A DNA stretch of 64,000 nucleotides, from NCBI RefSeq assembly GCF_036321535.1, contig NC_087452.1, positions 34,658,001-34,722,000 of the forward strand, written 5' to 3'. This stretch comes from Camelus dromedarius (lineage: Eukaryota). Numbering within the stretch: the first letter of the stretch is position 1; each line of letters starts with the position of its first letter. Both the position numbers and the translations under genes were made by a program. Of this stretch, positions 7,090 through 56,989 are shown in pieces. Under the pieces are notes generated by a model. It saw nothing but the letters and a program-made list of their open reading frames with translations, was not told where the DNA came from and did not search any database.

Positions 7090-9083
7090 ATGGAGACCCA
7101 GAGGGCCAGCCTCTCCCTGGGCCGCTGGCCACTGTGGCTACTGCTGCTGGGACTAGCGGTGCCTTGGGCCAGCGCCCAGGCCCTGAGCTATAGGGAGGCG
7201 GTGCTTCGAGCTGTGGATCGCCTCAATGAGCAGTCCTCAGACCCCAATCTCTACCGCCTCTTGGAGCTGGACCTGCCGCCCAAGGCTGTGAGTCGGGGAG
7301 GGGCTGGGGAGGGAGGTGTCTCCTGCCAGGCTTGGCCACACTGTCCCTCCCTTTGCTCGTGCTGTACCTCCTGTCAGGAAGGCACCTCTCCCTCTAAGTG
7401 GGATCCCACCTCTACAGAAATCCTCCCAGAGCTGGGTCCCCTCCCCTTGTGAGAGCCTTCTGCCTGGCATCTCTGCTGTGGGAACAGAGCCCTGACAGCC
7501 CGCTCAGGCTCCAGGGACTCCTGGGGGCTCCAGGGATACGCTGGGGTCACTGGCTCTGGGATGTGACTTCCCTGCTTCCAGTCCCCTGTGCACCCCATTG
7601 TCTTCCCACCAGGGAAGGGCTGTGCTCAGCCTTGGGGTTCCAGTGACAAGGTCTTTCCCTGCAGGTGTTCCCTGACTTCCCTCAGCCCCTCCAAGGGGAA
7701 CTGCCCCTCAGGAGAGCGGGTCTGAGTTCCCCTCCTGCTCCCTGTGAGCCTGGGAGCACAGGACCAGGCTGTGTCCTCCTCCCCTCTGCACCCAGCCCCC
7801 AGCCCAGGGCCAGGCACATGTGAGGGGCTGTCAAGGGGGCTGTCCTGCTGGGGGCAGGGACACAGGTCACACAAAGGAGCATGAGCCTGAGCCAGTCTCC
7901 CCACTTTGATCCTTGAGCAGGACGAGGACCCAGATGCCCCGAAGCCTGTGAGCTTCACGGTGAAGGAGACCGTGTGTCCCAGGAGGACACAGCAGCCACC
8001 GGAACAGTGTGACTTCAAGGAGAATGGGGTGAGGCTGGGGGCTTAAGGTGCTGGTGGGTGCCTCCCAAGACCCGAACAGGAGGCTTGGGGCGGGTTGTGG
8101 TTAGCAGCCCCTGGGGTGAGGCTGGTAGCTGGGGGTGCTGGTGGATGCCTCCCAAGAACAGGAACAGGAGGCTCGAAGGTGTGGTGTTATTTGCAGCCCC
8201 TGGGGTGAGGCTGGGTGGTTATGGCTCAGGGGTTACAGTGTGACCTGGTGTCTCCCCTTCCAGGTGGTGAAACAGTGTGTGGGGACAGTCACTCTGGACC
8301 AGTCCAGGGACCAACAGGACATCACCTGTGATGAGGTGAGTGACCCCTTCCAGGCTGCAGAGGCTGCTGCTGGGTCTGGTTTGTGGAACATCCTTTGGAC
8401 CAATTCTCCTCTGTGCCATCCCTGTAGCGGCAGGAAAGCCCTCCTCCCCTGGCTCCCCCTCACCCGAGCCCCAGGTCTCCAGGCCGGGCTCTGCAATCCC
8501 TTAGAGCAGTGGTTCTCTCATTGGGCTCCCCATACAGGACGTGTCAGAACGGCAAAAATTCTCAGGCCCCACTCTGACGTACTGAATCAGAGTCTAGGTT
8601 GGGGCCCAGTAATTTGTCTTGTAAGAGCCCTTGTAAGGGATTCTGTGCTGAAGTTTAAGAGGCACTGAGTAGGGTAATGGGCTTTTAGCCCCTGCTTCTG
8701 TCCTGCTTTGCTGGGAAGGGCTTGTGCCCCTGGGAAGCCCCTTGTCATCTCTGGGTCTTGGCTTCCTCCTCTGTGAGTGAGTGTAGGGATTCAACCATGT
8801 GCTCCAAAGGTCACACCCAGAGGGTGAACGGGGGCCTCAGGGCTCCTGGGGTGGCACTGGGAGGGGGATCAGCAGGTGAGGACAGGGGGTCTTGGGTTGA
8901 CCCTGGTTCCGACCCAGAAGAAATCTGTTTCCTCCTGGTTCACAGCTTCAGAGTGTTAGGAGCATTCGCCGGCCACGGCTGCCAAGGCCAAGGGTGCCAC
9001 GTCCATATATCCCACCAAGGATACCAAGGCCAGTATTGCCGCCACCACGGTTTCCTATTCCAAGGTTTCCGAGAGGACGGTGA
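7090..9083 (+). CDS. CATHL: Cathelicidin gene 1, 171-aa precursor; predicted mature Pro/Arg-rich peptide [39 protein letters not shown](-GR), PR-39/VicBac-like
   Basis: Exons 7090-7287, 7921-8028, 8264-8335, 8946-9083, all GT-AG and phase 0. [13 protein letters not shown] signal, [21 protein letters not shown] and four cathelin Cys are present. LQSV precedes the peptide and G-R precedes the stop. Confidence 0.97.
8507..8667. mobile_element. MER5A-like hAT element in intron 3 of gene 1, shared by all seven genes
   Basis: CAGTGGTTCTC...GAGGCACTG termini and tactgaatcagagtct core. Copies at about 16628-16792, 25799-25964, 33988-34152, 40974-41124, 56452-56610 and 61797-61955. Confidence 0.75.
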
Positions 9084-12200: not shown

Positions 12201-15200
12201 CTCTTCATTCACAGAATACTCTTAAAACTTGTATTATACAACTGCATTCATATAAACATGAATATAACCCAAGCTGCTTTTCATCTTATGTATTCATCAA
12301 TATGTCAGTGTTTTCATCCGTGATTTTAAACAATTAAAAGTAAAACTTTCTGTGGATCCCTAGATGTCTCAGGGGCTAGGAACGCTGCCTAGTGTGCTGA
12401 CCGATAAGTGGGTCCTGGCAGGTGACGATCCTGTAGGCGCCCAGACACGCCTGCAGACACTAAATGCCTTCTGCTGTCTTTTCCAGGATGACTTAACCTC
12501 GTGGTTCTCTTTCAGCTCCTAGTTTCAGCTGAATTGGTCCATGGGAAAGAGGAAGCTGATCCTGAGCGGAGGGTCCTGACCCTCACCCTTGACCCAAATC
12601 CCTGCCTTCACAGCACCATGGCTGCCATCGCAGGTCCCTGCAGAGGGCAGGGGGCAGGGGGCAGGGCCTGAATCCTTCCCCTTGTCCCTGTGAAAAGGAC
12701 AGGTGGTGGGTCATTGAGGGGCATGACTCCATGTCCCCAGTCTGTCATTTCTTGAGTAGGAGGTCCTTGATGGAATGACGTAGCCCATGGGTCTCATTTT
12801 CCTCATCAAATGGGCAGTCAGAGCTGGTGGAGATTTCCAAGGTTAGGGGCACAGTTTGGGGTTCTGGTCCAGTTCCATTGCTCTGGAGCCTCTGGAGTCT
12901 CACAGACAGGAAGGATGGTTGGGAGGAGAAAAGGAGCCGGGACGTCCAGATCATGGCTAATTTCCTGAGGTTGTTGGCACGACGGGTGCATGAGGGTTTC
13001 TCAATGATCAGATGTGGAGTCAGGGGCCAACCAACCTGGGGACAAGGGCAGAGGAGCCTTTCCTGAGAACACGTCTGCTCTGACAGGCTATGAGGACAAA
13101 CCAGGAAAGTCAGATGCTAGAGGCAGGGACAGCACACCCCCATCCAGGCAGTTGTAGTCTGAGGACCTGACAGGCGACATTCCAAAGACCCAGACTGTCC
13201 AAAGTCTGAGCAAACGCAAAGGTGCAGAGGCAGGAAAGCACAGAGAGGATTTCAAGGGGATCTGATACCCGGTCACCGTGGGTTTTGCTAGTTATTTTCT
13301 ACTGCAATCACCTCCTTTTCTTCCTCCTTCTTGGGAAAAGGATACAGCTTGACCAAGAGGCCACTGGGGCAACACCCGGACTGTGACACCAGGTTGCACA
13401 GAAGCCCCTCTCTCCTTCCTTCTCGAAGGGTGAGTGCGAAACCAGCACATCCGACCAGGCTGTTACCTTCTGAGGTGCCCCATTCCGTTGCCCAGAGTCC
13501 CCAGGTCACAGGTGGCCATGGCCTATCCCAGGCCTTCAGTCTCAGGGCCATTCCATGGGACACTGGATTAGAATTGGCATCTGGTCTCTGGGATCCTCTA
13601 ACACATCGGCTCATTCACTTTCCCAGCTGGACCCCCTCCTCCTCCCTCTCTGGCCACTCCATCCTGGTGTCTCAACCTGAGCCCTGGAGAGGGAGTACCT
13701 TGGGGACAAGTCAGAAGAGACTTTGTGAGGCTGTGGGAGCTAAGATGGGGAGTTGCTGTTTCTCTGGTTGAAGGTCAGATAAGGCTTCACAAAACGAAAA
13801 GTCACGGCAGTCAGAGGGATCAGGTGTAGCGATATGAGAAGAGCAGAGGCTCCGAGGGGCCTGAGAGGTTGGGGTGGACGTGGCGGCCTGACACAGGGTT
13901 TTGCAGGTGAGCACCTGAGGACAACCTGATCCAGACCCTGAGCCACTGACTCAAGGCGGGAGGTTTGATGGACCCCTGGACAATGGCAGGGAACACTGGG
14001 CTGTGGTGTGGGAAGAGCCTGGAACCAGAAAAGGTGGAGTCTGGAGGTTGTGGCTACACTTCAGAGGAGAGGAGATGGTGGTAGGACAGGGCAGGGGTGA
14101 CAGTGGGGACAGGGAGGGCCCTCAGAGGAAGGAGCAGGTGGGGTTCCCAGGCTCTCAGCTCAGGGCTCCCGTGAGGGCTCCTAGCCAACAGCCCCAGACA
14201 GCCCTGTGCTGACAACCAGGAGTGTTCACAGGAGTGTTGCCTCGGACCCACAGACCAGTGATGTGTGTCCCTGATAACTAGTATCTGAGGAAGGGATGTG
14301 CCCAGAATGCATGAGAACTGCTTTGAGAAGCTGTACAGATCACGTGTGCAAGCCCTGCAGTAAAAGTTTTATTAAAAGTTCAGTACTTAGATTAGACAGA
14401 GCAGGAGGCACCCGGGAGGCCAGGAAGTGGACCCAGGAAGGTGGTCCCAGGGGAGAATGGGGGAGGGGGCAGTTTCAGTAGACAGAGGGGTCCCTGGCAC
14501 CTGTGAAGGCAAGGACAAGGCTTCAGCATGCCCTTTGTATCATTCGAAAGCTGTTAAGCAGGCATGGACCTTGAGTTGAAAGAGGACAAATAGTGGGGTC
14601 AGAGTGTAGATGAGCCTTCTCTTACTGGCTGTCTGGGTAAGGGGAACAGTGTGCATCTGGAAGGGGCTGGGACAGGACATTTTTAGAGTGAAGAAGGCAA
14701 AGGAGAAGAATCCAGAAGAGGGGACAGTGGAGGAGATGCCCTGACTGGCTGAGGGCTGGGTCCGCAGAATAGGACGGTGTGGCCCTGATGTCTGCCTAGG
14801 GAGTGGATGGGTGTGAAAGGCACTAGATGGGGGTGGTCCTGCCATCTATTCATCATATGTTAACTGAGTGCCTACTGGGGGCCAGGAGGCCCAGGAGCTG
14901 GAGGTTGTGTGGTGAATACACTCTTTCAGCCTGATTCTGAGGAGATCACAGTGAGGAGGCCGAGAGGGTGTAGGACACAGCCATTCCCTCTGTCTCCTGG
15001 AGGACTCAACCCTGTGGAGCAACCCTGCCCATGAAACTCCCCATGGGGCCCAGGAGAGGCCGAGATGCTGTCAGGGAGATGGAGGAACCTTTTCTTCACC
15101 TTGCACAGGAGGCAGACCTCACCCACTGCCCAGCAATCCCCTGAGGCAAGAGCGGGGCCTGAGGCAAGTCCAGCTCACACCCTGGCCGGGGACAGGGATG

Positions 15201-18200
15201 GGGCAGGTGGGGAAGGCTCCTGCTTGAGCAATTGCATCAGGCCCAGGCTGAGCATAAAGGAGGGTCCTGTGGGCTGGGAGGAGGCAGACTCGGGGACCAT
15301 GGAGACCCAGAGGGCCAGCCTCTCCCTGGGCCGCTGGCCACTGTGGCTACTGCTGCTGGGACTAGCGGTGCCTTGGGCCAGCGCCCAGGCCCTGAGCTAT
15401 AGGGAGGCGGTGCTTCGAGCTGTGGATCGCCTCAATGAGCAGTCCTCAGACCCCAATCTCTACCGCCTCCTGGAGCTGGACCTGCCGCCCAAGGCTGTGA
15501 GTCGGGGAGGGGCTGGGGAGGGAGGCGTCTCCCGCCAGGCTTGGCCACACTGTCCCTCCCTTTGCTCGCGCTGTACCTCCTGTCAGGAAGGCACCTCTCC
15601 CTCTAGGTGGGATCCCACCTCTAACAGAAATCTTCCCAGAGCTGGGTCCCTTCCCGTCGTGAGAACCTTCTGCCTGGCATCTCTGCTGTGGGAACAGAGC
15701 CCTGACAGCCCGCTCAGGCTCCAGGGACTCCTTGGGGCTCCAGGGATACGCCGGGGTCACTGGCTCTGGGATGTGACTTCCCTGCTTCCAATCCCCTGTG
15801 CACCCCATTGTCTTCCCACCAGGGAAGGGCTGTGCTCAGCCCGGGTGTTCCAGTTTCAAGGTCTTTCCCTGCAGGTGTCCCCTGACTTCCCTCAGCCTCT
15901 CCAAGTAGAGTTGCCCCTCAGGAGAGCGGGTATGAGTTCCATTCCTGCTCCCTGTGTGCCTGGGAGCTCAAGACTAGGCTGTGTCCTCCTCTCCTCTGCA
16001 CCCAGCTCCCAGCCCAGGGCCAGGCACATGGGACGGGCTGTCAAGGGGGCTGTCCTGCTGGGGGCAGGGACACAGGTCACACAAAGAAGCATGAGCCTGA
16101 GCCAGTCTCCCTACTTTGATCCTTGAGCAGGACGAGGACCCAGATGCCCCGAAGCCTGTGAGCTTCACGGTGAAGGAGACCGTATGTCCCAAGAGGACAC
16201 AGCTGCCTCCGGAGCAGTGTGACTTCAAGGAGAATGGGGTGAGGCTGGGGGCTTCGGGCGCTGGTGGGTGCCTCCCAAGACCCAAACAGGAGCCTTGGGG
16301 CAGGTGGTGGTTAGCAGCCCCTGTGGTGAGTCTGGGTGTTTATGGCTCAGGGGTTCCAGTGTGACTTGGAGTCTCCCCTTCCAGGTGGTGAAACAGTGTT
16401 TGGGGACAGTCAACCTGTACCAGCTCAGGGACAACTTCGATATAACATGTAATGAGGTGAGTGACCCCTTCTGGGCTGCAGGGGCTACTGATGGAGGTGG
16501 TGTGTGAAACAGCCTTTGGACCAATTCCCCGCTGTGCCATCCCTGTAGTGGCAGGAGGGACCTCCTCCCCTGGCTCCCCTTTACCTGAGCCCCAGGTCTC
16601 CAGGCCGGGCTCTGCAGTCCCTTAAAGCAGTGGTTCTCTCAGTGGGCTCCCCTCTTGGGAACTAGAGAAAAAGGCTGATTCTCAGGCATGACTCAGACCT
16701 ACAGAATCATTGTGTGATGTGGAGCCCAGTAATTTCTATTTTAAGAGCCCTTCTGAAGGATTTCTGAGTGTGCTGAAGCTTGAGAGGCAGTGACTAGAGA
16801 CAGGACCTTTCTGCCCCTGCTCCCGTCCTGCTTTTCTGAGATGGGTTTGTGCCCCTGGGAAGCCCCCTGTCATCTCTGGACCTTGGTCCTCATCTGTCTG
16901 TGGGAGTGATGATTCAACCACGTGCTCCAAGTGACACAGACAAGGAGGTCTAATGGTGCCTCAAGTCTCCTTCGGTGTTCCAAGATGGAAGAATTTCAGA
17001 TGGGGAGGGATCTGGTCTTGTCCCTAAGTCAGTCCTCACAAGAATCCTGTTTCCTTCTGCTTCACAGCTCCAAAGTGTCGGGTTATTTGGCCCGATTCTT
17101 GGTATCGTCCGTGCCGGTGTGAAATTGGTTCTAGATAAGTTTGGCAAATAATCGGATAGATTGGTGATAAAATTCGCCCAGGGTAGAGTCCTAATGATCA
17201 CCTAACTCTGGCTCAGTTGTTCAAACTCTGGAAATAAATTCTTATGAATTTCAAATTCACCTGTCTCTTGTCCTACTCTTACCAGGGGTCCTTAACCCCC
17301 ATTGCCCTCTTGAGTGTGTGTGTGTGTGTGCGCGCGTGTGTGGTCACTTCCGTGAACACAGAGATGGGTGTGGCAGCTGTTCCTTCCAGGAGGGCAGGGG
17401 GAGGCAGCAGGGCCGGGAGGGACAGGACAGGGCTCCATTCTCAGGAACCCCATGCCCTTCACACTCCCCCGCCCTCCTCCTCCTCCACCAAGTAGGGGCT
17501 TAAAGAGACCTAGTCTGTGTGCAGTGCTGCTGGGGATGCTGTTCCTGCTGGTATGGAGGTGACAGTCCAGGAGGACCAGGTGGCTTGTTAATCACTCGGG
17601 GAGACACAGCTCTGTCTCCTGCTGGTGGGCTCTAAGGTCAGCCTGCAGGTACAATGTCCAGATTGTTCCACTTCCCTCACAATCTGAACACTGAAAGAGC
17701 CCATCCTTCCTGGCTTTTGCTCTGGGCATTGAGACACATCAGTCTTTCTCCTGTGGGGTCTCAGATTTCAGATGTGGGCTTGTGTTCAGGGATCCAATGG
17801 TACCACAATTGGCACCATTAGAAGCAAGCCTCCTGCTCATCGGGGTGAAGGGCTCTGCCTGAGTGAGAGACACACACAGTGACACACAGGCCACATGTCT
17901 GTTTGCCTGGGGGTTTCAGACACTGTCCCTGTCCTGCCCACTCCCCACTCTGTAGCTGACCTTTGTTGGGGGGCAGACTGGAATCACGGGGGAGGCGGCA
18001 GTCCCGGGAGCAGCCTCAACCAACCATCGCTGGGACATTTCCCTCATTGGTGGAAACGTCTCTTCTGTTCCTCACTCCTTGGGGGGCCCACTCCCAGATG
18101 TGTCCCCCCTCCCTGAGGTCCCCAGCTGGGTGGAGCCCCTGTCCCCACTTCAGTGACCTGTCTATTGACTTGTCCTCTTCTGATGTCGATTCTGCCCGGT

Positions 18201-24490: not shown

Positions 24491-26357
24491 ATGGAGACCC
24501 AGAGGGCCAGCCTCTCCCTGGGCCGCTGGTCACTGTGGCTACTGCTGCTGGGACTAGCGGTGCCTTGGGCCAGCGCCCAGGCCCTGAGCTATAGGGAGGC
24601 GGTGCTTCGAGCTGTGGATCGCCTCAATGAGCAGTCCTCAGACCCCAATCTCTACCGCCTCCTGGAGCTGGACCTGCCGCCCAAGGCTGTGAGTCGGGGA
24701 GGGGCTGGGGAGGGAGGCGTCTCCCGCCAGGCTTGGCCACACTGTCCCTCCCTTTGCTCGTGCTGTACCTCCTGTCAGGAAGACACCTCTCCCTCTAGGT
24801 GGGATCCCACCTCTCACAGACATCCTCCCAGAGCTGGGTCCCCTCCCCTTGTGAGAGCCTTCTGCCTGGCATCTCTGCTGTGGGAACAGAGCCCTGACAG
24901 CCCTCTCAGGCACCAGGGACTCCTGGGGGGCTCCAGGGATACGCTGGGGTCACTGGCTCTGGGATGTGACTTCCCTGCTTCCAAACCCCTGTGCATGCCA
25001 TTGTCTCCCCACCAGAGAAGGGGTGTGCTCAGCCTGGAGATTCCAGTGACAAGGTCTTTCCCTGCAGGTGCCCCTGACTTCCCTCAGCCCCTCAAAGGGG
25101 GATGTGCTTCTCATGAGATGGGGTCTGAGGTCCCCTCCTGCTCCCTGTGTGCCTGGGAGCCCAGGACCAGGCTGTGTCCTCCTCCCCTCTACACCCAGCC
25201 CGCAGCCCAGGGCGAGGCACATGGGATGGGCTTTCAAGAGGGCTGTTCTGCTGCGGGGCAGGGACACAGGTCACCCAAGGAAGCATGAGCCTGAGCCAGT
25301 CTCCCCACTTCGATCCTTGAGCAGGACGAGGACCCAGACGCCCCAAAGCCTGTGAGCTTCACGGTGAAGGAGACCGTGTGTCCCAGGAGGACACAGCTGC
25401 CACCGGAGCAGTGTGACTTCAAGGAGAAAGGGGTGAGGCTGGGAGCTGAGAACGCTGGCGGATGCCTCCCAATGACCCGAACAAGAGGCTTCGGAGGGTG
25501 GTTAGCAGCCCCTGGGGTGAGGCTGTGTGTTTATGGCTCAGGGATTCCAGTCTGAACTGGAGGTTCCCCTTCCAGGTGGTGAAACAGTGTTTGGGGACAG
25601 TCACTCTGGACCAGGTCAAGGACCAAATAGACATCAGTTGTAATAAGGTGAGTGGCCCTTCTTGTTTTGAGCTGCTCTGGGGAGAGGTGTGGAACATCAT
25701 TTGGACCAGTTTTGTTCTTGTTCATTCAGGGCTTCCTACCCTGGCTCCCCCCTCACCTGAGCCCAAGTCTCCAGCCTGGGCTCTGCAATCCCTTGGAGCA
25801 GTGGTTTGTTCTCTAAGTGGCATTATCACCTGGGAACTATTGGAAAGGCAGCTTCTTAGTCCACATTCAGACCTACTGAGACAAAGTTGGGGTGGGTCCC
25901 AGAAATTTGTATTTTAAGAAGCCTTCCTGGGGATTCTGACTGTGCTGAAGTTTGAGAGGCACTGACTACAGTAATGGGATTTCTGCTTCTGCTTCTGTCC
26001 AGCTGTGGTGGCCAGTGATCCGGGGAGGCCTTGGCATCTCTGTGTCCTGGTTTTCTCATCTGTCTATGGGAGTAGGGATTCAACCACATGCTCCAAAGTT
26101 ATAGCCACAGAGTGAATGGGACCCAAGCCTCCAGGAGTGGCTCAGGAGTAGGATGTGTAGAAAGGGACCTGAATCATTTTGATTCTGGATCAGTACTGAC
26201 AAGAAGCCTGTTTCTTCCTGCTTCACAGCTCCAGAGTGTAAGGGGATTTTTTCCACCACCATTCCCACCTGGACCCTTCCCATTTCCCCCTTTCCCACCA
26301 ATCCCGCCAATACCACCATTTCCATTTCCGCGGCCATTTGTTAGAAGACGACGGTGA
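24491..26357 (+). CDS. CATHL: Cathelicidin gene 3, 168-aa precursor; predicted mature [38 protein letters not shown]
   Basis: Exons 24491-24688, 25325-25432, 25576-25647, 26229-26357 with GT-AG sites and four Cys. AATAAA at 26460-26465. Confidence 0.96.
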
Positions 26358-32659: not shown

Positions 32660-34547
32660 ATGGAGACCCAGAGGGCCAGCCTCTCCCTGGGCCGCTTGTC
32701 ACTGTGGCTATTGCTGCTGGGACTAGCGGTGCCTTGGGCCAGCGCCCAGGCCCTGAGCTATAGGGAGGCGGTGCTTCGAGCTGTGGATCGCCTCAATGAG
32801 CAGTCCTCAGACCCCAATCTCTACCGCCTCTTGGAGCTGGACCTGCCGCCCAAGGCTGTGAGTCCGGGAGGGGCTGGGGAGGGAGGCGTCTCCCGCCAGG
32901 CTTAGCCACACTGTCCCTCCTTTTGCTCGCGCTGTACCTCCTGTCAGGAAGGCACCTCTCCCTCTAAGTGGGATCCCACTCTACAGAAATCTTCCCAGAG
33001 CTGGGTCCCCTCCCGTTGTGAGAGCCTTCTGCCTGGCATCTCTGCTGTGGGAACAGAGCCCAGACAGTCCGCTCAGGCTCCAGGGACTCCTGGGGGCTCC
33101 AGGGATACGCTGGGGTCACTGGCTCTGGGATGTGACTTCCCTGCTTCCAATCCCCTGTGCAACCCATTGTCTCCCCACCAGGGAAGGGCTGTGCTCAGCC
33201 TGGGGGGTTCCAGTGACAAGGTCTTTCCCTGCAGGTGTCCCATGACTTCCCTCAGCCCCTCCAAGGGGAGCTGCCCCTCAGGAGAGCGGGTCTGAGGTCC
33301 CCTCCTGCTCCCTGTGTGCCTGGGAGCCCAGGACCAGGCTGTGACCTCCTCTCCTCTGCACCCAGCTCCCAGCCCAGGGCCAGGCACATGGACAGGCTCT
33401 CAAAGGGGCTTGTTATCCTGGGGGCAGGGGGATATGTCACACATAGAAGCATGAGCCTGAGCCAGTCTCCCCACTTTGATCCTTCAGCAGGACGAGGACC
33501 TAGATGCCCCAAAGCCTGTGAGCTTCACGGTGAAGGAGACCGTGTGTCCCAGGAGGACACTGCTGCCACCGGAGCAGTGTGACTTCAAGGAGAATGGGGT
33601 GAGGTTGGGGGCTTAGGGCGCTGGTGGGTGCCTCCCAAGACCCGAACAGAAGGCTTGGGGCGGGTGGTCGTTAGCAGCCCCTGGGGTGAGGAAGGGTGTT
33701 TATGGCTCAGGGGTTCCAGTGTGACCTGAAGTCTCCCCTTCCAGGTGGTGAAACAGTGTTTGGGGACAGTCAACCTGTACCAGCTCAGAGACAACTTCGA
33801 TATAACATGTAATGAGGTGAGTGACCCCTTCTGGGCTGCAGAAGCTATTGGTGGAGGTGGTGTGTGGAACAGCCTTTGGGCCAATTCCCCTCTGTGCCAT
33901 CCCTGTAGCGACAGGAGAGCACTCCTCCCCTGGCTCGCCCTCATCCGAGCCCCAGGTCTCCAGGCCGGGCTCTGCAATCCCTTAGAGCAGTGGTTCTCTC
34001 ATTGGGATCCCCACTTGGCAACTAGAGAAAAAGGCTGATTCTCAGGCATGACTCAGACCTACGGAAGCACTGTCTGTGTTGGAGCCCAGTAATTTCTATT
34101 TTAAGAGCCCTTCTGAAGGATTTCTGAGTGTGCTGAAGCTTGAGAGGCAGTGACTATAGACAGGACCTTTCTGCCCCTGTTCCCGTACAGCTTTTCTGAG
34201 ATGGGTTTGTGCCCCTGGGAAGCCCCCTGTCATCTCTGGACCTTGGTCCTCATCTGTCTGTGGGAGAGATGATTCAACCACGTGCTCCAAGTGACACAGA
34301 CAAGGAGGTCAAATGGTGCCTTAACTCTCCTTCGGTGTTCCAAGATGGAAGATTTTCAGGTGGGGAGGGATCTGGTCTTGTCCCTAAGTCAGTCCTCACA
34401 AGAATCCTGTTTTTTTCTGCTGCACAGCTCCAAAGTGTTGGGTTATTTGGCCGGATTCGTGATTCCATCCGTAACCGTGTGAACAGGGTTCGAGATGCGA
34501 TTGGGAAAGTAATCGGATACGTTGGTGATAAAATTCGCCCAGGGTAG
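32660..34547 (+). CDS. CATHL: Cathelicidin gene 4, 165-aa precursor; predicted mature [34 protein letters not shown](-G), BMAP-34/PMAP-37-like
   Basis: Exons 32660-32857, 33491-33598, 33745-33816, 34428-34547 with GT-AG sites. AATAAA at 34595-34600. Confidence 0.96.
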
Positions 34548-34726: not shown

Positions 34727-37700
34727 TACTTCCGTGAACACAGAGATGGGTGTGGCAGCTGTTCCTTCCAGGATGGCGGGGAGAGGCAGCAGGGCCGGGA
34801 GGGACAGGACAGGGCTCCATTCCCAGGAAACCCATGCCCTTCACACTCCCCCGCCCTCCTCCTCCTCCACCAATTAGGGGCTTAAGGAGACCTAGTCTGT
34901 GTGCAGGGCTGCTGGGGATGCTGTTCCTGCTGGTATGGAGGTGACAGTCCAGGAGGACCAGGTCGCTTGTTAATCACTCGGGGAGACACAGCTCTGTCTC
35001 CTGCTGGCGGGCTCTAGGGTCAGCCTGAAGGTAAAATGTCCAGATTGTTCGACTTCCCTCACAATCTGAACTCTGCCTGAGCCCACCCTTCCTGGCTTTT
35101 GCTCTGGGCATTGAGACACATCAGTCTTTCTTCTGTGGGGTCTCAGATTTCAGGTGTGGGCTTGTGTTCAGGGATGCAATGGTACCACAATTGGCACCAT
35201 TAGAAGCAAGCCTCCTGCTCATCGGGGTGAAGGGCTCTGCCTGAGTGAGAGACACACACAGTGACACACAGGCCACATGTCTGTTTGCCTGGGGGTTTCA
35301 GACACTGTCCCTGTCCTGCCCACTCCCCACTCTGTAGCTGACCTTTGCTGAGGGGCAGACTGGAATCACGGGGGAGGCGGCAGTCCCGGGAGCAGCCTCA
35401 ACCAACCATCGCTGGGACTTTTCCCTCATTGGTGGAAACGTCTCTTCTGTTCCTCACTCCTTGGGGGGCCCACTCCCAGATGTGTCCCCCCTCCCTGAGG
35501 TCCCCAGCTGGGTGGAGCCCCTGTCCCCACTTCACTGACCTGTCTATTGACTTGTCCTCTTCTGATGTCGATTCTGCCCGGTCTCACATCTCTATTTTCC
35601 TGCTGGTGCTTCGAAGGAATCGCCTCCCAGAGCACCTGCTTCCTCTTGAATGCTGGCCTGAGCTCTGCTCCTGGGCCGACCTGCACCAACACACAGAGCC
35701 CCGTGTGTCAGAGGGACAGCGGGCGGGACCGCGCAGAGCATGGGCTCTGTAATCTGTCAGGCTCGTCTGTTCATGGGGAGCAGGTGGGCCTGATTTGAGG
35801 CAGCTTAGAGGAACCCATGCTTCTCACTTTACATCACCCCAGGTGAGGCAGGAAACCTCACAGAGGAAACCCAGGGACTGTGTCGTGTCTCTGCCACAGC
35901 ATACAAGACTGCAAGAGCTACTTGTTAAAATTTCAGGATTTTCTGAGTTGGTCATTAAACTCTTGGTTGCTTGAAATCTGCCTTGGTGGAAGAATTTACA
36001 GCATGGAAATCAGCAAATGCTACACATCAGGCCCATCACAGCTGGTCCATCACTGTCCAACCTGAGAGAGGGCTCACTCATCAGGATGATATGGGCTGTG
36101 CTGATGTCATCTGTTTGCAGTTGTCTCCCAGGATTGCTGATCCTGCTTCAGGAGGGTGGGACATGGATGCTGATGGCTCTCAGGTGCCATATTCCACGGC
36201 TTCACTGCCTCCCAAGGAGAAGCCTGGGGGTTTTGTCCTCTCTGCCCCCATTCTGTGGCTGGTGACTGACTATGAGGGGACATCAGAGCCCAGCCCCTGC
36301 CTCAGTCACTCCTAAAGCAGGGGTGCAATTCTGGTTCCTGGGCTTTTCTAGGTGAGGCTGAAGCTGGGCTCAGAGGGAGCACCTCTCTGCTCAGCTCCTT
36401 CCTCTGCACAACCCTGCTCTCCTCCCCCTCCTGCTGACCACACCCCTCAATTAATCACATGACTCTGAATTCCCAGCTCAGGCCCTGCTTCTAGAGAACC
36501 GGCCTAGGATGGCGGTGGAGCTGTGTGGAGCCCGGCCAGCTCATCCCAGGTGGCTCGGCTGTGGGGCCTGACGTGGAGCTGAGAGAGAGGAGAGGCAGAG
36601 GTGTGCAGGGTAGGGGTGCGGGAGAGGAGTTGGAGCGGGGCAGCGCTGGCAGCCAAGGGGCCCTGAGGAGTTTACAAAGTGCTCAGAGTAGGACAGGAGG
36701 CCGAGAGCCCGGGGCGATGACTCCTAGTGGTTTCCCGGTGTTTGTGCAGATGTGGAGGCCACGGACCTCAGTGGGGGCAGCCTCAGAGATCTGGGGGCAC
36801 AGAAGTCCCACGCAGTGAGGGGAGGAGAAGCAAGAGGTAAGGAAGAGGGGAGGCCATGAATGGGGACACACAGGGGCTTCTCCTTCCCCCAGACCCCCGC
36901 TGTGCCAGGGAGGGACACTGGGCTGTTATCAGGCAAGGTCCTTGTTGATGTGGCCCTTGACCCCCACTTCTGAGGTCTCCAGAGTCATTTTCGGGGCCCC
37001 TATATGTGACAGGGCACTTCACATTGTCATGAATAGGGCAGAGAAAGAGAATTCTGAGGAGTATGGACATCTGAAAGCCATTGCTCCTCTGCCTGTGTGG
37101 CCCTAGGCAGAAGAAGAGATCTTTCTGGGCCTATGTCTACCTGTAACTGACACCACATAGCCTAATTTGAGGGGCTGGTCAATGGCTTAGCTCGAAAAAC
37201 AAGGTCGAGTACCACATAGGGGCTGAATCTGAGGTGGAGGCTGATGGAGTCTAGGAGACCATAGTTAGTCTGGGTCCATCTCAGGGCACAGATCTGGCTC
37301 GTGTGTCGGAGCAGGGACCCAGAGAGACACTTGGAATCCCCATCAGAACAGCAGGAGGGAAATACATGTCATTCTGTCCTGAGCGAGCAGAACTGGCCCG
37401 TCTGCACGAGCCTTTAGCGTCTGGTCCTTACTAGTCAGCAGCTGACACAGTGGGGGGCCTCCAGGCTTGCTCTGCTCCGACTGAGGGATGCCCGTGCCAG
37501 TCACATCCCGAGTCCTGTTCCCCAGCCCCATGGACTCTCTAGCTTCCGCCCGAGAGTGGGGGTTCCTTGTGTCCCATTCGCACCCCGTGTTCTCCTGTGT
37601 GTCACTCTGCCCCTGTGCCTACCCAGCCAGAGCAGGGAAGGATGCTGACAGGGGAGACAGGGGTACACTGGGACTTTCAGGGCCCTGGCACTTCTATCTT

Positions 37701-39667
37701 CCTGGGCCTCTTCATTCACAGAATACTCTTAAAACTTGTATTATACAACTGCATTCATATAAACATGAATATAACCCAAGCTGCTTTTCATCTTATGTAT
37801 TCATCAATATGTCAGTGTTTTCATCTGTGATTTTAAACAATTAAAAGTAAAACTTTCTGTGGATCCCTAGATGTCTCAGGGGCTAGGAACGCTGCCTAGT
37901 GTGCTGACCGATAAGTGGGTCCTGGCAGGTGACGATCCTGTAGGCGCCCAGACACGCCTGCAGACACTAAATGCCTTCTGCTGTCTTTTCCAGGATGACT
38001 TAACCTCGTGGTGCTCTTTCAGCTCCTAGTTTCAGCTGAATTGGTCCATGGGAAAGAGGAAGCTGACCCTGAGCGGAGGGTCCTGACCCTCACCCTCGAC
38101 CCAAATCCCTGCCTTCACAGCACCATGGCTGCCATCGCAGGTCCCTGCAGAGGGCAGGGGGTAGGTGCTGAATCCTACCCCTTGTCCCTGTGAAAAGGAC
38201 AGGTGGTGGGTCATTGAGGGGCATGACTCCATGTCCCCAGTCTGTCATTTTTTGAGTAGGAGGTCCTTGATGGAATGACGTAGCCCATGGGTCTCATTTT
38301 CCTCATCAACTGGGCAGTCAGAGAGCTTGTTGATATTCCCCCATATTTGGGGTACTATTTCGGACAGTGGTACACTTCCATTTCCTTGGTGTCTCATGGA
38401 TAGGAAGGATGTCTGGGGAGAGAAAAGGAATGATGTCCATGGAGGATCATGGCTTACTCCCTGAGTTTATCGGGGTAATGGGTGCATGAGGGTTTCTCAA
38501 GAACCAGATGTGGAGTCAGGGGCTAACCTGCCTGGGCACTAGGGCTATGGGGTCTTTCCTGAGAAGACCTCTGCTCTGACAGGCTGTGAGGACAAACCAG
38601 GGAAGTCAGATGCTAGAGGCAGGGACAGCACACCCCCATCCAGGCAGTTGCAGTCTGAAGTCCTGAAAGGGGACACTCCATGGACCCAGGGAAGGATGAG
38701 GAATGGAAGTTCAGTCTAAAGTCTGAACAAACGCAAAGGTGCAGAGGCAGGAGAGCCGACTGAAGATTTCAGGGGGACCTGACACCCAGTAACCGTGAGT
38801 ATTGCTAGTTATTTTCTACTGTAATCACCTTCTTTTCCATCTCTGACTTGGGAAAATGATACAGCTTGACGAAGATGCCACTGGGGCAACACCTGGACTG
38901 TGACACCAGGTTCCCCAGAAGCCCCTCTCTCCTTCCTTCTCCAAGGCTGAGTGTGCAACCAGTGCATCTGTCCAGGCTGTCACATTCTGAGGTGCCCCAT
39001 CCGATTGCCCAGAGTTCCATAGGTCAAAGAAAGCCAAGAGGTAACTCAGGCTTTCGATCACAGGGCCATTCCATGGGAGACTGAATTAGAATTGACATCA
39101 CGGTCTCTAGGCCGCTCTGACATATCGACTCATTCATTTTCCCAGCTGGGCCCCCTCCTCCTCCCACACCGGCCGCTCCATCCTGGTGTCTCAACTTGAG
39201 CCCTGGATAGGGAGTACCTTGGGGACAAGTCAGAAGAGACTTCGTGAGGCTGTGGGAGCCGAGATGGGGAGTTGCTGTTTCTCTGGTTGGATGTCAGCCT
39301 GATTCTGAGGAGGTCACAGTGAGGAGGCCGAGAGGGTGTAGGACACAGCCTGTTCCCTCTGTCTCCTGGAGGACTCAACCCTCTGGAGCAACCCTGCCCA
39401 TGAAAGTCCCCACGGGGCCCAGGAGAGGCTGAGATGTTGTCAGGGAGATGGAGAAACCATTTCTTCACCTTGCACAGGAGGCAGACCTCACCCATTGCCC
39501 AGCAATCCCCTGAGGCAAGAGCGGGGCCTGAGGCAAGTCCAGCTCACACCCTGGCCGGGGGCAGGGATGGGGCAGGTGGGGAAGGCTCCTGCTTGAGCAA
39601 TTGCATCAGGCCCAGGCTGAGCATAAAGGAGGGTCCTGTGGGCTGGGAGGAGGCAGACTCGGGGACC

Positions 39668-41740
39668 ATGGAGACCCAGAGGGCCAGCCTCTCCCTGGGC
39701 CGCTGGCCACTGTGGCTACTGCTGCTGGGACTAGCGGTGCCTTGGGCCAGCGCCCAGGCCCTGAGCTATAGGGAGGCGGTGCTTCGAGCTGTGGATTGCC
39801 TCAATGAGCAGTCCTCAGACCCCAATCTCTACCGCCTCCTGGAGCTGGACCTGCCGCCCAAGGCTGTGAGTCAGGGAGGGGCTGGGGAGGGAGGCGTCTC
39901 CCGCCAGGCTTGGCCACACTGTCTCTCCCTTTGCTCGTGCTGTACCTCCTGTCAGGAAGGCACCTCTCCCTGTAGGTGGGATCCCACCTATCACAGAAAT
40001 CCTCCCAGAGCTGGGTCCCCTCCCGTTGTGAAAGCCTTCTGCCTGGCATCTCTGCTGTGGGAACAGAGCCCTGACAGCCCGCTCAGGCTCCAGGGACTCC
40101 TGGGGGCTCCAGGGATACGCCGGGGTCACTGGCTCTGGGATGTGACTTCCCCTGTGCACACCATTGTCTCCTTTCCAGGGAAGGGCTGTGCTCAGCCTGG
40201 AGGTTCCAGTGACAAGGTCTTTCCCTGCAGGTGTCCCCTGACTTCCCTCACCCCTCTAAGGGGGAGCTGCCCCTCAGGAGAGCGGGTCTGAGGTCCCCTC
40301 CTGCTCCCTGTGTGCCTGGGAGCCCAGGACCAGGCTGTGTCCTCCTCCCCTCTGCACCCAGCCCCCAGCCCAGGGCCAGGCACATGGGACGGGCTGTCAA
40401 GGGGGCTGTCCTGCTGGGGGCAGGGACACAGGTCACACAAAGAAGCATGAGCCTGAGCCAGTCTCCCCACTTTGATCCTTGAGCAGGACGAGAACCCAGA
40501 TGCCCCAAAGCCTGTGAGCTTCACGGTGAAGGAGACCGTGTGTCCCAGGAGGACACAGCAGCCAACGGAGCAGTGTGCCTTCAAGGAGAATGGGGTGAGG
40601 CTGGGGGCACTGGCGGATGCCTCCCAAGGACCTGAACAGGAGGGTCCAAAGGAAGGCTTGCAGCCCCTGTGGTGAGGCTGGGTGGTTATGGTTCAGGGCT
40701 TCCAGTCTGACCTGGAGTCTCCCCTTCTAGCTGGTGAAACAGTGTGTGGGGACAGTCACTCTGGACCAGTCCAAGGACCAAAAGGACATCACCTGTGATA
40801 AGGTTAATGACTCCTTCTGGGCTGTAGGGGCTGCTTGTAGGAGTGGGGTGTGGAACATCTTTTGGACCAATTCCCTTCTGTGCCATCACTTTAAGGGGAG
40901 GAAATTCCTCCTCCCCTGGCTCCCCCTCACCAGAGCCCCAGGTCTCCAGGCTGGGCTCTGGAATCCCTTACAGCAGTGGTTCTCTCAGTGGGCTCCCCAC
41001 TTGGGAACTAGAGAAAATGGCTGATTCTCTGGCCCCACTGAGATCTACCCAATTAGTTTGAGGTGGGTGCCAGCAATTCTTATTTTAAGGCTTCCTGGGC
41101 ATCCTGACTGCTTGAAAGGCACTGACTAGAGTAATGGACTTTCTGCCCCTGCTCCCATCCAGCTTTGCTGGGATGGGCTTGTGCCCCTGGGAAGCCCCTT
41201 ATCATCTCTGGAACCAGTGTCCTCATCTGTGCGTGGGTGAGGTGATATGCTCCTAATGTCACAGGCAGAGGTGAACTGGGGACCCAAGTTCCTGGAGTCC
41301 ACCTGGAATGTGGTTCAGTGTGGAGAGAAGGGCCTTGTGATTGTGGCCCAGTTAGTACAAGAAAACTTTCTTTTGATCCACAGGCCCGGAGATTTCGCCC
41401 GCTACCCTTTCTACCGCCGAGGATACCACGGCAGAGGTTCCCTGCGCCAAATTTCCCTCCGCCAAATTTCCCTCCTCCTGAGTTTCCTCTGCCAAATTTC
41501 CCTCCGCCAAATTTCCCTCCTCCTGAGTTTCCTCTGCCAAATTTCCCTCTGCCAAATTTCCCTCCGCCAAATTTCCCTCCTCCTCAGTTTCCTCCGCCAA
41601 ATTTCCCTCCTCCTCGGTTTCCTCCGCCAAATTTCCCTCCGCCAAATTTCCCTCCTCCTGAGTTTCCTCTGCCAAATTTCCCTCCACCAAATTTCCCTCC
41701 TCCTGAGTTTCCTCTGCCAAATTTCCCCCCTCCCATCTAA
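39668..41740 (+). CDS. CATHL: Cathelicidin gene 5, 244-aa precursor; prophenin-like exon 4 ([18 protein letters not shown] plus 20 FPxPx pentamers)
   Basis: Exons 39668-39865, 40487-40594, 40731-40802 (donor GTTAAT), 41384-41740. ORF is open through the repeat. AATAAA at 41896-41901. Confidence 0.9.
41438..41737 (+). repeat. Coding 15-bp minisatellite (20 units) in gene 5 exon 4
   Basis: Units of TTCCCTCCGCCAAAT, TTCCCTCCTCCTGAG and TTTCCTCTGCCAAAT. A 45-bp higher-order unit occurs 4 times. Confidence 0.95.
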
Positions 41741-42040
41741 TTACCCCTGCCAAATTTGCATTCCCATTCAGCCCGCCAAGATTTGCTACAAGAAGGTGAA
41801 AGATTTACAGATAACTCCTGTATAAGGGCATTTAGCGAATCAGAGGCCCGGGGAGACTCCTAAGGGTCTGCTTTGCCCTGGGTCAGGATTTGAAAAATAA
41901 ATTCTTGTGAAAACAGTTTGCTCCAGGCTTCACTTTTACTTTTCTCCCCTCCTCCCACTTACCAGGACCAAGTACTTAACTGTGGCAGGCCGTGTGCGCT
42001 CGTGCGTGCGTGCGTGTGTGCATGTGCGTGTGTGTTTTCA

Positions 42041-50846: not shown

Positions 50847-52057
50847 TTCAGTGAGGTTTTTCATGGGCACACAGGTGACCATCACGGCAGGACCTCCTTC
50901 CACCATGGAGGGACCCCCCTGCTTCACCAGCTGCACGGACAGCAGGGGATCAGGCTGGTCTCCTCTTCATATCTTGAGTTTCACACCAACGCAGCATGGC
51001 TCCCAGCAGCCCCAGCTCTACCCTCCACAGTCCCTGCCACCCACCAGCCTTCCCAGTCTCCATCCCCCTCCAGCCTGCGATCCCAGCTCCCCAGACTCTT
51101 CCCTTGTTTGTTGTTTTAATCCGAGCTCCGTTTCAGAAAGGGAAGAAACTCCTAGGGAGGGAGGTTTTGCTGGAGACATGATCAGTGGTTCTCAGCTGGT
51201 GGGGAGTGGTCAGAAACGTGCCTTTAAAATCTCCTAAATTTCTTTTTAGAAATAAGCAAAAGCAGGTGAGACCTGGATCTGCTGAGCTGGACCTGGGATC
51301 CATCTGAGTGGTGGGACTGGGGAAATGAAATCTGTGGAAATTATATTCTGATCTCCAGTTCGTCCCTCCCCCAGGAGTTGGTCCCTTCTCAAGTCACTTT
51401 ACAAAGTGCATGGTAGATGTCAGAGCCTCTGGAGGGGCTGTTTCTACCTTCCCAAGGCATCACGAAAAGACTGATTGATCTACACTAACAACAAGCCAGG
51501 CTGTGGGGAAGGACCACAGAGCCACCTGGGGAGATGGAGGGGGTGTGCGCCTCGTGTGAGGTGTCCTGTCTGACTCCGTCCTCCTGGAATTTAATGTCTG
51601 GATAGGCTTGGCCTGCCTCCTGCCTGAAGCACACGGCCTCCAGGAGGCTGACCTGAGATGCTGGGCTTTGCAGGTCCTTGTCCTGGTAGAGGGGTGGGGA
51701 GGAGGTGCCCTCTGTGATGTACTTGAGGCATCCAGATCCTCAAAGGGGAGAGAATACCCTCTTAGGCTCTGGAAACCAGCCTGGCTTCTCTGCACCCGTG
51801 TCCCCAGTAAAAACCCACTCACAGGAATGGTACCCATGCCCACCCGTCTGCCCCACATCTGGGGCTGGGAGCCTGGTCTCTTCTGCAAAGCTGGGCATCC
51901 TCCCATTCAGCCTGCACCCTGGCCCAGCTCAACGTGTCATCCTGCTGGGACCAGCTGGTTGGATGTTTGCTGTCCTAGTTGATGGTGAGATCGAGCCTGG
52001 GCCTGGCTCAGGCTGATGTCCGTGGCCAGGGAGGTGGGTTCAGCTCAAGCCAGACTC

Positions 52058-55131: not shown

Positions 55132-56989
55132 ATGGAGACCCAGAGGGCCAGCCTCTCCCTGGGCCGCTGGCCACTGTGGCTACTGCTGCTGGGACTAGCG
55201 GTGCCTTGGGCCAGCGCCCAGGCCCTGAGCTATAGGGAGGCGGTGCTTCGAGCTGTGGATCGCCTCAATGAGCAGTCCTCAGACCCCAGTCTCTACCGCC
55301 TCCTGGAGCTGGACCTGCCGCCCAAGGCTGTGAGTCAGGGAGGGGCTGGGGAGGGAGGCGTCTCCCGCCAGGCTTGGCCACACTGTCCCTCCCTTTGCTC
55401 GCGCTGTACCTCTTGTCAGGAAGGCACCTCTCCCTCTAGGTGGGATCCCACCTGTCACAGAAATCTTCCCAGTGCTGGGTCCCCTCCCGTTGTGAGAGCC
55501 TTCTGCCTGGCATCTCTGCTGTGAGAACAGAGCCCTGACAGCCCGCTCAGGCTCCAGGGACTCCTGGGGGCTCCAGGGATACGCTGGGGTCACTGGCTCT
55601 GGGATGTGACTTCCCTGCTTCCAGTCCCCTGTGCACCCACCCCATTGTCTCCCAACTAGGGAAGGGCTGTGCTCAGCCTGGATGTTCCAGTGACAAGGTC
55701 TTTCCCTGCAGGTGTCCCCTGACTTCCCTCAGCCCCTCCAAGGGGAGCTGCCCCTCAGGAGATGGGGTCTGAGGTCCCCTCCTGCTCCCTGTGCGCCTGG
55801 GAGCCCAGGACCAGGCTGTGTCCTCCTCCCCTCTGCACCCAGCCCCCAGCCCAGGGCCAGGCACATGGGACGGGCTGTCAAGGGGGCTGTCCTGCTGGGG
55901 GCAGGGACACAGGTCACACAAAGAAGCATGAGCCTGAGCCAGTCTCCCCACTTTGATCCTTGAGCAGGACGAGGACCCAGACACCCCAAAGCCTGTGAGC
56001 TTCACGGTGAAGGAGACCGTGTGTCCCAGGAGGACACATCTGCCACCGGAGCAGTGTGACTTCAAGGAGAAAGGGGTGAGGCTGGGGGCGCTGGTGGATG
56101 CCTCCCAAGGACCCAAACAGGAGGCTCCAGGAGAAGGCTTGCAGCCCCTGGGGTAAGGCTGGGTGGTTATGGCTCAGGGGTTCCACTGTGACCTGGAATA
56201 TCCCCTTCCAGTTGGTGAAACAGTGTGTGGGGACAATCACCCTGGACCAGGTCAAGGGCCAAATGGACATCGCCTGTGATGAGGTGAGTGAGTCCTTCCG
56301 GGCTGCAAGGGCTACTGGTAGGGGTGGTGTGTGGAACAGCCTTTGGACCAGTTCCCCTCTGTGCCATCCCTATAGCAGCAGGAAAGCCCTCCCCTGGCTC
56401 CCCCTCACCCGAGCCCCAGGTCTCCAGGCCGGGCTCTGCAATCCCTTAGAGCAGTGGTTCTCTCAGTGGGCTCCCCACCCAGGACTTGTCAGAAAGGCAG
56501 ATTCTGTTTCCACTGAGACCTACTGAATCAGAGTCTGGGGTGGGACCCAGCAACTTGTATTTCAACCAGCTGAAGGGGATTCTGACTGTGCTAACGTCTG
56601 AGAGGCACTGACTAGAGTAATGGGCTCTCAGCCCCTGCTCCCCTCTGGTTTGCTGGGATGGGCTTGCGACCCAGAGTAGCCCCTTGTCATCTCTGGACCT
56701 CGATTTCCTCATCTGTGTGTGGATGTAAGGACTCAACCACATGCTCCAAAAGTCACAGCCAGAGGGTGAACTGGGGACACAAGGCTCCTGGGGTTACCCA
56801 GTTAGGGGAGGTGCCCAGGTGTGGAGATGTCTGGTCTCACCTCTGGTTCCATTCCCCATATGTAACCCGGTTCTTCCTACTTCACAGCTCCAGAGTGTTG
56901 GGTTTTTTAAGAAGGCACGTAATAAGCTTAAAAACGCCTGGCGGAAGGTTGGCCCGATAGTTGGCCCGTTACTCACTTTCTTCGGGTAA
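55132..56989 (+). CDS. CATHL: Cathelicidin gene 6, 159-aa precursor; predicted mature [28 protein letters not shown](-G), BMAP-27/28-like
   Basis: Exons 55132-55329, 55968-56075, 56212-56283, 56888-56989 with GT-AG sites. AATAAA at 57055-57060. Confidence 0.97.

Follow-up and report, generated by a model that had tools for sequence, protein, structure and literature searches.

A prophenin-like cathelicidin gene of the dromedary with a Glu-containing pentamer array and an early stop codon

The pig prophenins, prophenin-1 (PF-1; 79 amino acids (aa)) and prophenin-2 (PF-2; 97 aa), are proline/phenylalanine (Pro/Phe)-rich products of cathelicidin exon 4. PF-1 is built of FPPPNFPGPR decamers with an FPPPI unit and a ...PFGPPRFP end (PMC10459379). 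Antibacterial activity, which in prophenins is directed mainly at Gram-negative bacteria, has been reported for PF-1 and PF-2, and the pig peptide is active against E. coli. Natural PF-1 begins exactly at the boundary between the repeat and a preceding head segment, the position of tritrpticin (VRRFPWWWPFLRR). Panteleev et al. mined the genomes of all seven living camelids (2022, Membranes 12:515; PMC9146984) and listed prophenin-like peptides with differing repeat numbers in each of them (Table S2); for the same group, prophenin-like peptides make up a structural family of their own that extends across Cetartiodactyla (PMC11484942). Here we analysed a 64,000-nucleotide (nt) stretch of the dromedary genome (Camelus dromedarius; NCBI RefSeq assembly GCF_036321535.1, contig NC_087452.1, positions 34,658,001 to 34,722,000 of the forward strand), referred to as the window. 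It contains a gene at 39668-41740 (+), gene 5, which an initial annotation had described as encoding a prophenin-like peptide with a charge-reversed repeat domain.

Gene 5 has four intact exons and encodes a protein of 244 residues. Sequence comparison indicates that it is very probably the dromedary ortholog of the camelid prophenin-like cathelicidin. The spliced protein matches XP_064352204.1 ('protegrin-2-like [Camelus dromedarius]') residue for residue, and an older model with the same exon 4, XP_031327000.1, is named 'prophenin and tritrpticin precursor-like [Camelus dromedarius]'. In Table S2 of PMC9146984 the gene-5 peptide is listed from the dromedary assemblies JWIN and LSZX under 'prophenin-like cathelicidins'; this is the same gene, with no difference in sequence. 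Both the name of the older model and this grouping support the prophenin-like reading, while the novelty implied by the initial annotation does not hold, the gene being annotated in RefSeq and published in 2022. Panteleev et al. let the mature peptide begin at RFPAPN, thus treating the head as a separate segment, and their paper contains no functional data and no mention of a relic in the 3' untranslated region (UTR) or of the origin of the glutamate (Glu) units. Gene 5 is therefore already known, and the 3'UTR relic and the series of arginine (Arg), glutamine (Gln) and Glu units described below are small additions. The explanation as a whole, a prophenin-like ortholog with a truncated C-terminus, repeat units rewritten to Glu and the processing proposed below, has in our estimate a probability of about 0.85.

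Reading the gene from its promoter to its polyadenylation signal revealed the following features:

39593..39601, + strand, TTGAGCAAT, putative C/EBP-like element of the proximal promoter, read from sequence
39622..39627, + strand, CATAAA TATA-like box, 46 nt before the ATG, unchanged across the seven paralogs
39668..39865, + strand, exon 1, 66 codons, signal peptide and start of the cathelin-like domain, ATG at 39668, GT donor
40487..40594, + strand, exon 2, 36 codons, cathelin-like domain, AG/GT splice sites, phase 0
40731..40802, + strand, exon 3, 24 codons, end of the cathelin-like domain, AG/GT splice sites, phase 0
41384..41437, + strand, head of exon 4, 18 residues with 6 Arg, position of pig tritrpticin
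41438..41737, + strand, coding tandem array, 20 units of 15 nt, partly in a 45-nt higher-order repeat
41738..41740, + strand, TAA stop, common to camelids and early compared with the whale ortholog
41741..41799, + strand, relic of ancestral C-terminal coding sequence, now 3'UTR, aligning with whale coding sequence
41896..41901, + strand, AATAAA polyadenylation signal, conserved in whale

The exons (198, 108, 72 and 357 nt) are all in phase 0 with GT/AG at each junction, and the three introns set apart a fourth exon for the variable mature peptide, as in the cathelicidin gene layout. An AG acceptor directly precedes 41384, and the exon-4 coding sequence including its stop is exactly 41384-41740. 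Exons 1, 2 and 3 scored 50.7, 56.1 and 26.8 bits against Pfam PF00666 (curated cutoff 21 bits) and jointly span profile positions 1-97 of 101. The four conserved cathelin cysteines (Cys) are present as Cys85, Cys96, Cys107 and Cys124. An additional Cys44 (39797-39799), which leaves the dromedary cathelin-like domain with a fifth, unpaired Cys, is encoded by TGC where Bactrian camel and alpaca have CGC (Arg); it is also found in XP_064352204.1. Over the 250 nt before its ATG, gene 5 is 97-98% identical to its six cathelicidin neighbours in the window. Part of this stretch is TTGAGCAAT, a putative C/EBP-like element of the kind known from myeloid promoters; six paralog promoters have it unchanged, and one of the seven shows a single-base difference. 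A TATA box has been reported for alpaca cathelicidin genes, and their polyadenylation signal lies at 60-120 nt (Panteleev et al. 2022, PMC9146984), a range that includes the 97 nt between the ancestral TGA and the AATAAA of gene 5. Gene 5 is thus an intact gene for a secreted pre-pro-protein with the common promoter of its cluster.

Translation of 41384-41740 (+) is uninterrupted and gives an 18-residue head, 20 in-frame pentamers (7 FPPPN, 5 FPLPN, 4 FPPPE and four singletons including FPPPI) and the TAA. The head starts with ARRF, includes PFL, and holds six Arg (charge +6) and no tryptophan (Trp). The 100-aa repeat contains 4 Glu and 1 Arg, with a net charge of -3 and a computed isoelectric point (pI) of about 4.1, whereas the complete exon-4 peptide (118 aa; 59 Pro, 50%; 22 Phe, 19%) is net +3. 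Tandem Repeats Finder (span 41438/41446-41727) detected a period of 15 nt with 19.3 copies and a period of 45 nt with 6.3 copies, 88% matches and a score of 452; this periodicity is far beyond chance. The layout, the charge counts, the 45-nt higher-order repeat and the lack of Trp at the tritrpticin position had all been read correctly in the initial annotation. Directly behind the exon-4 acceptor, 9 nt coding for leucine (Leu), Gln and serine (Ser), the residues that usually precede the elastase site, are deleted in comparison with the whale ortholog and with the paralogs in the camel.

The pig and camel peptides share a high Pro and Phe content (42 Pro and 15 Phe of 79 residues in PF-1), tandem units based on FPPPN, an FPPPI unit near the end and an RRF...PFL head between cathelin domain and repeat; RRF and PFL occur in the same order in tritrpticin. 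The pig unit is a decamer, matching the FPPPNFPGPR given in the initial annotation, whereas the camel array consists of pentamers in a 45-nt repeat. In the pig the second half-unit is the cationic FPGPR; in the camel it is FPPPE or FPLPN, and a cationic second half-unit (FPGPR/FPPPR) is missing from the dromedary, where one of the 20 units carries Arg and four carry Glu. The pig head contains WWW, which has no counterpart in the Trp-free camel head, and the ...PFGPPRFP tail kept by the pig sits behind the stop codon in the camel.

Low-complexity composition could by itself produce such a resemblance, with exon 4 arising independently in camelids. A HMMER search with exon 4 through the whole library (1.8 billion representatives) revealed one true relative, the Bactrian ortholog; the 11 other matches that were read are all unrelated Pro-rich repeat proteins, and the remaining list looks alike. 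A word-indexed search with the repeat region alone found nothing beyond the same camelid cluster, and no Pfam model matches exon 4. While the mostly unrelated HMMER matches and the lack of a Pfam model fit such convergence, the non-repetitive flanks speak against it. Full-length searches with the Bactrian ortholog and pig PR-39 as queries, each yielding hundreds of cathelicidins, detected a gray-whale gene with a similar tail (Eschrichtius robustus; RefSeq 'cathelicidin-2-like'). Its exon 4 is an open frame (L002:4761-5060) that encodes LQSV, an RRFR head (VRRFR with the Val of LQSV), FPPPIFPPGR decamers and a ...FPFPPPRFPGRR end before the stop. The RRFR head, the FPPPI unit and a ...PPRF..RR-TGA relic are homologous between camel and whale, as are about 130 nt of 3'UTR. 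The tail and 3'UTR of gene 5 align with the whale gene column by column, down to the polyadenylation signal. The two 3'UTRs are reciprocal best matches (score 58.5), while the camel paralogs score at most 44 against gene 5 and at most 39.5 against the whale gene, so that orthology extends to non-repetitive flanking DNA. The cathelin exons were left out of this comparison because they are homogenised among paralogs (exon 1 95-98%, promoters 97-98% identical) and cannot be used for orthology. Independent origin thus has next to no probability, and we continue with gene 5 as a prophenin-type ortholog.

Like the camel gene, the whale gene has an RRFR head, FPPPI-type units and the ancestral stop context. 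Its peptide of about 95 residues after valine (Val) differs in being strongly cationic (+14) and in keeping LQSV and the PPRFPGRR end. The whale RefSeq model (297 aa) leaves exon 4 early and is spliced to a distant exon at 12260 (L002:3001-12604), a near copy of which is also found at L002:1333-1674; the model looks chimeric, because the genomic exon 4 runs open to its natural PPRFPGRR-stop. The prophenin-like lineage is thus present in Tylopoda, Suina and Cetacea, which speaks for an older origin of prophenins. The initial annotation had suggested such an origin; the gray-whale ortholog supports it, and the published literature already contains this conclusion. Bac5 (bovine and ovine cathelicidin-2) and a hippopotamus RRFGRPP... 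peptide also have an LQSV-(R)RFR start and a ...FPGRR-stop end around a Pro-rich repeat, and may belong to the same ancient lineage as gene 5. What these ends frame differs from the camel array: strongly cationic repeats of the RPPx or PPIR type. For Bac5, literature cited in PMC11484942 reports fragments that inhibit bacterial translation.

The camelid TAA (41738-41740) follows directly on the FPPPI unit, whereas whale coding sequence, and that of the pig as judged by its peptide, extends about 19 codons further. Behind the TAA, the relic at 41741-41799 can be aligned with the whale codons for ...FPFPPPRFPGRR-stop. Its frame +2 has preserved ...PFSPPRFATRR-stop, and the relic ends in the ancestral TGA (41797-41799). 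The prophenin-type C-terminal ...PPRFP(GRR) tail thus occurs in gene 5 only as a 3'UTR relic, and in all camelids the early TAA has cut this ancestral cationic PPRFPGRR end off. The Bactrian camel has the relic unchanged, and the alpaca nearly so; since both also share the early stop, the truncation predates the camel/llama split.

The long alpaca array alternates FPPPN with FPPPR (TTCCCTCCTCCTCGG) and, with seven Arg, retains the cationic second half-unit. This ancestral decamer corresponds to FPPPNFPGPR in the pig and FPPPIFPPGR in the whale; in Camelus a three-unit repeat has taken its place for the most part. The Glu unit of the dromedary reads TTCCCTCCTCCTGAG. CGG is retained in unit 12, and CAG (Gln) stands in unit 10, where the Bactrian camel has CGG, so that one dromedary array holds Arg (CGG), Gln (CAG) and Glu (GAG) versions of the same unit type. 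Because CGG and CAG units persist in the array, the Glu unit can be traced along a path from Arg over Gln to Glu (CGG to CAG to GAG), the first step of which is a CpG transition. The alpaca decamer and these three versions bear out the replacement of the FPGPR half-unit by FPPPE that the initial annotation had put forward.

Repeat charges differ among the camelids as follows:

dromedary, -3
Bactrian and wild Bactrian camel, -1
alpaca, short model, -1
alpaca, long model, +3

As the long alpaca array is still cationic, the charge reversal is a trend of Camelus that is strongest in the dromedary. The anionic rod of the initial annotation accordingly stands for the dromedary with its net -3, but it is only mildly acidic and confined to Camelus. 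Gene 5 is a clear case of the charge of a host-defence peptide being rewritten by turnover of a coding minisatellite.

As a tandem array, the repeat could owe its count of 20 to collapse or expansion during assembly. Shorter arrays in older short-read assemblies (13 units in dromedary JDVD, 12 in C. ferus AGVR) and an alpaca model with 11 units against 21 in a newer one are in line with this. However, two RefSeq models and the assemblies JWIN and LSZX have the same 20-unit array as the window. The chromosome-level assemblies of Bactrian and wild Bactrian camel also have 20 units, differently arranged; the dromedary array is separated from the Bactrian one by a gain and a loss of 15 nt each and by four point changes, none of them synonymous. 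The JDVD form (PMC9146984 Table S2) equals the 20-unit array minus units 3-9 (equally 2-8), between two identical FPPPN units, and also carries an alanine (Ala)-to-Val change. This pattern fits a true deletion allele as well as a collapse. An artefactual count of 20 is very unlikely. Other array lengths are listed for Bactrian, wild Bactrian, alpaca, vicuna and guanaco in PMC9146984. The length polymorphism suggested by the initial annotation is borne out as far as lengths differ between assemblies (13 and 20 units in dromedary, 11 and 21 in alpaca); as alleles, these lengths are plausible but unproven, because of the two ways in which the JDVD form can be read.

By analogy with established cathelicidin biology, myeloid cells would produce the pre-pro-protein and keep it in neutrophil granules. 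Elastase would then cleave it near Ala127, yielding a polyproline-II peptide of 117 residues and about 13.4 kDa. Were this peptide cut again at the Gln/Arg boundary, the position that corresponds to the N-terminus of natural pig PF-1, a 16-mer head might be freed; computed values are +5 and pI 12 for this head and pI 4.5 for the 101-residue rod left behind. The Arg/Pro head (+5 to +6) would account for whatever antibacterial action there is, and the weakly acidic rod would add little to killing. This scheme of myeloid storage, elastase cleavage and an active head is tentative, and we rate its chances somewhat below even. The head lacks the Bac7/oncocin ribosome-binding consensus and at its start resembles the Bac5 and hippopotamus peptides, so an intracellular target is possible but unsupported. 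A more elaborate version assumes a two-part product, in which the freed 16-mer would act inside bacteria like a Bac5 or PR-39 fragment, the 101-residue rod would serve something other than killing, such as keeping the head masked until it is cleaved or providing a protein- or ligand-binding scaffold, and the Arg-to-Glu shift would have been selected; we consider it rather improbable. If the gene-5 peptide is made, it offers a natural experiment on how far a prophenin depends on cationic charge, and on whether the head at the tritrpticin position is the active part.

Several observations weigh against the explanation that we prefer. No pig prophenin precursor was found among the 120 matches listed for each full-length search, and with PF-1 taken from a table in PMC10459379 the comparison of pig and camel is one of motifs only. 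Four pig candidates (P0274, P0280, P0198 and P0218) were rejected as mis-spliced models without a prophenin tail. The elastase site carries Ala instead of the usual Val. A regular-expression search of the whole gene-5 protein gave no match to the consensus (R/K)XX(R/Y)LPRPR of class I proline-rich antimicrobial peptides, the ribosome-targeting Bac7/oncocin type, as stated in PMC9146984. The literature yielded no functional data on any camelid prophenin-like peptide; a 2026 dromedary study tested three peptides, the gene-5 peptide not being among them, and its match to pig prophenin-2 by liquid chromatography-tandem mass spectrometry (LC-MS/MS) is not specific to gene 5. Finally, 432 nt of non-repeat coding sequence show 12 nonsynonymous and no synonymous differences between dromedary and alpaca, at an intron divergence of about 4.3%, and therefore no sign of purifying selection beyond the open frame.

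These last figures bear on the main rival, according to which gene 5 is a real prophenin ortholog that drifts under relaxed constraint after loss of its tail and most of its Arg units, with little or no antimicrobial role; the composition of the array, its charge included, would then result from unequal crossing-over and CpG decay. Besides the 12:0 ratio, it can draw on the exclusively nonsynonymous exon-4 point differences from the Bactrian camel, on repeat charges ranging from -3 to +3 among camelids and on the loss of the cationic tail and of the Val cleavage site; moreover, with units of 15 nt the frame stays open even if selection is absent. On the other side, the open reading frame, six splice sites, four cathelin Cys, promoter and polyadenylation signal are intact in dromedary, Bactrian camel and alpaca, intact peptides are reported in all seven camelids, and the head is conserved but for 3 of its 18 residues. 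Positive selection accounts for the absence of synonymous changes no less well than drift, the chance of none in 12 being estimated at about 0.04 for a synonymous share of one quarter of sites; counts as small as these do not decide between the two. On balance we regard decay as unlikely, albeit with an appreciable share of the probability, and retain the reading of gene 5 as a truncated, Glu-rewritten prophenin ortholog.

Gene 5 belongs to a cathelicidin cluster and is, as its label had anticipated, the fifth of seven cathelicidin genes in the window. The exon-4 peptides of the seven genes match, exactly or nearly, camel peptides in the literature one by one; the other six genes are:

7090-9080, + strand, CamBac gene
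15299-17148, + strand, gene for a 23-mer MAP-like peptide
24491-26354, + strand, Vp38-like gene
32660-34544, + strand, Vp35-like gene
55132-56986, + strand, Vp29-like (CdCATH) gene
63278-61437, - strand, Vp24-like gene

Proximal promoters (250 nt before the ATG, e.g. 39418-39667) and exon 1 are 95-98% identical across the seven genes, and the exon-4 sequences are unrelated. The 5' halves of these genes thus evolve in concert. Just past the stop of gene 2, another frame (17139-17183) reads ...IGDKIRPG, the C-terminal end of Vp35-like peptides; since this end persists there, the 23-mer of gene 2 looks like a frameshifted Vp35-like derivative. Between the intact genes, at 17571-17642, 34953-35012 and 50896-51063 (-), tblastn gave weak matches to exon 1 of cathelicidins (E 0.05-0.9) that contain stops; they may be degraded copies or due to chance.

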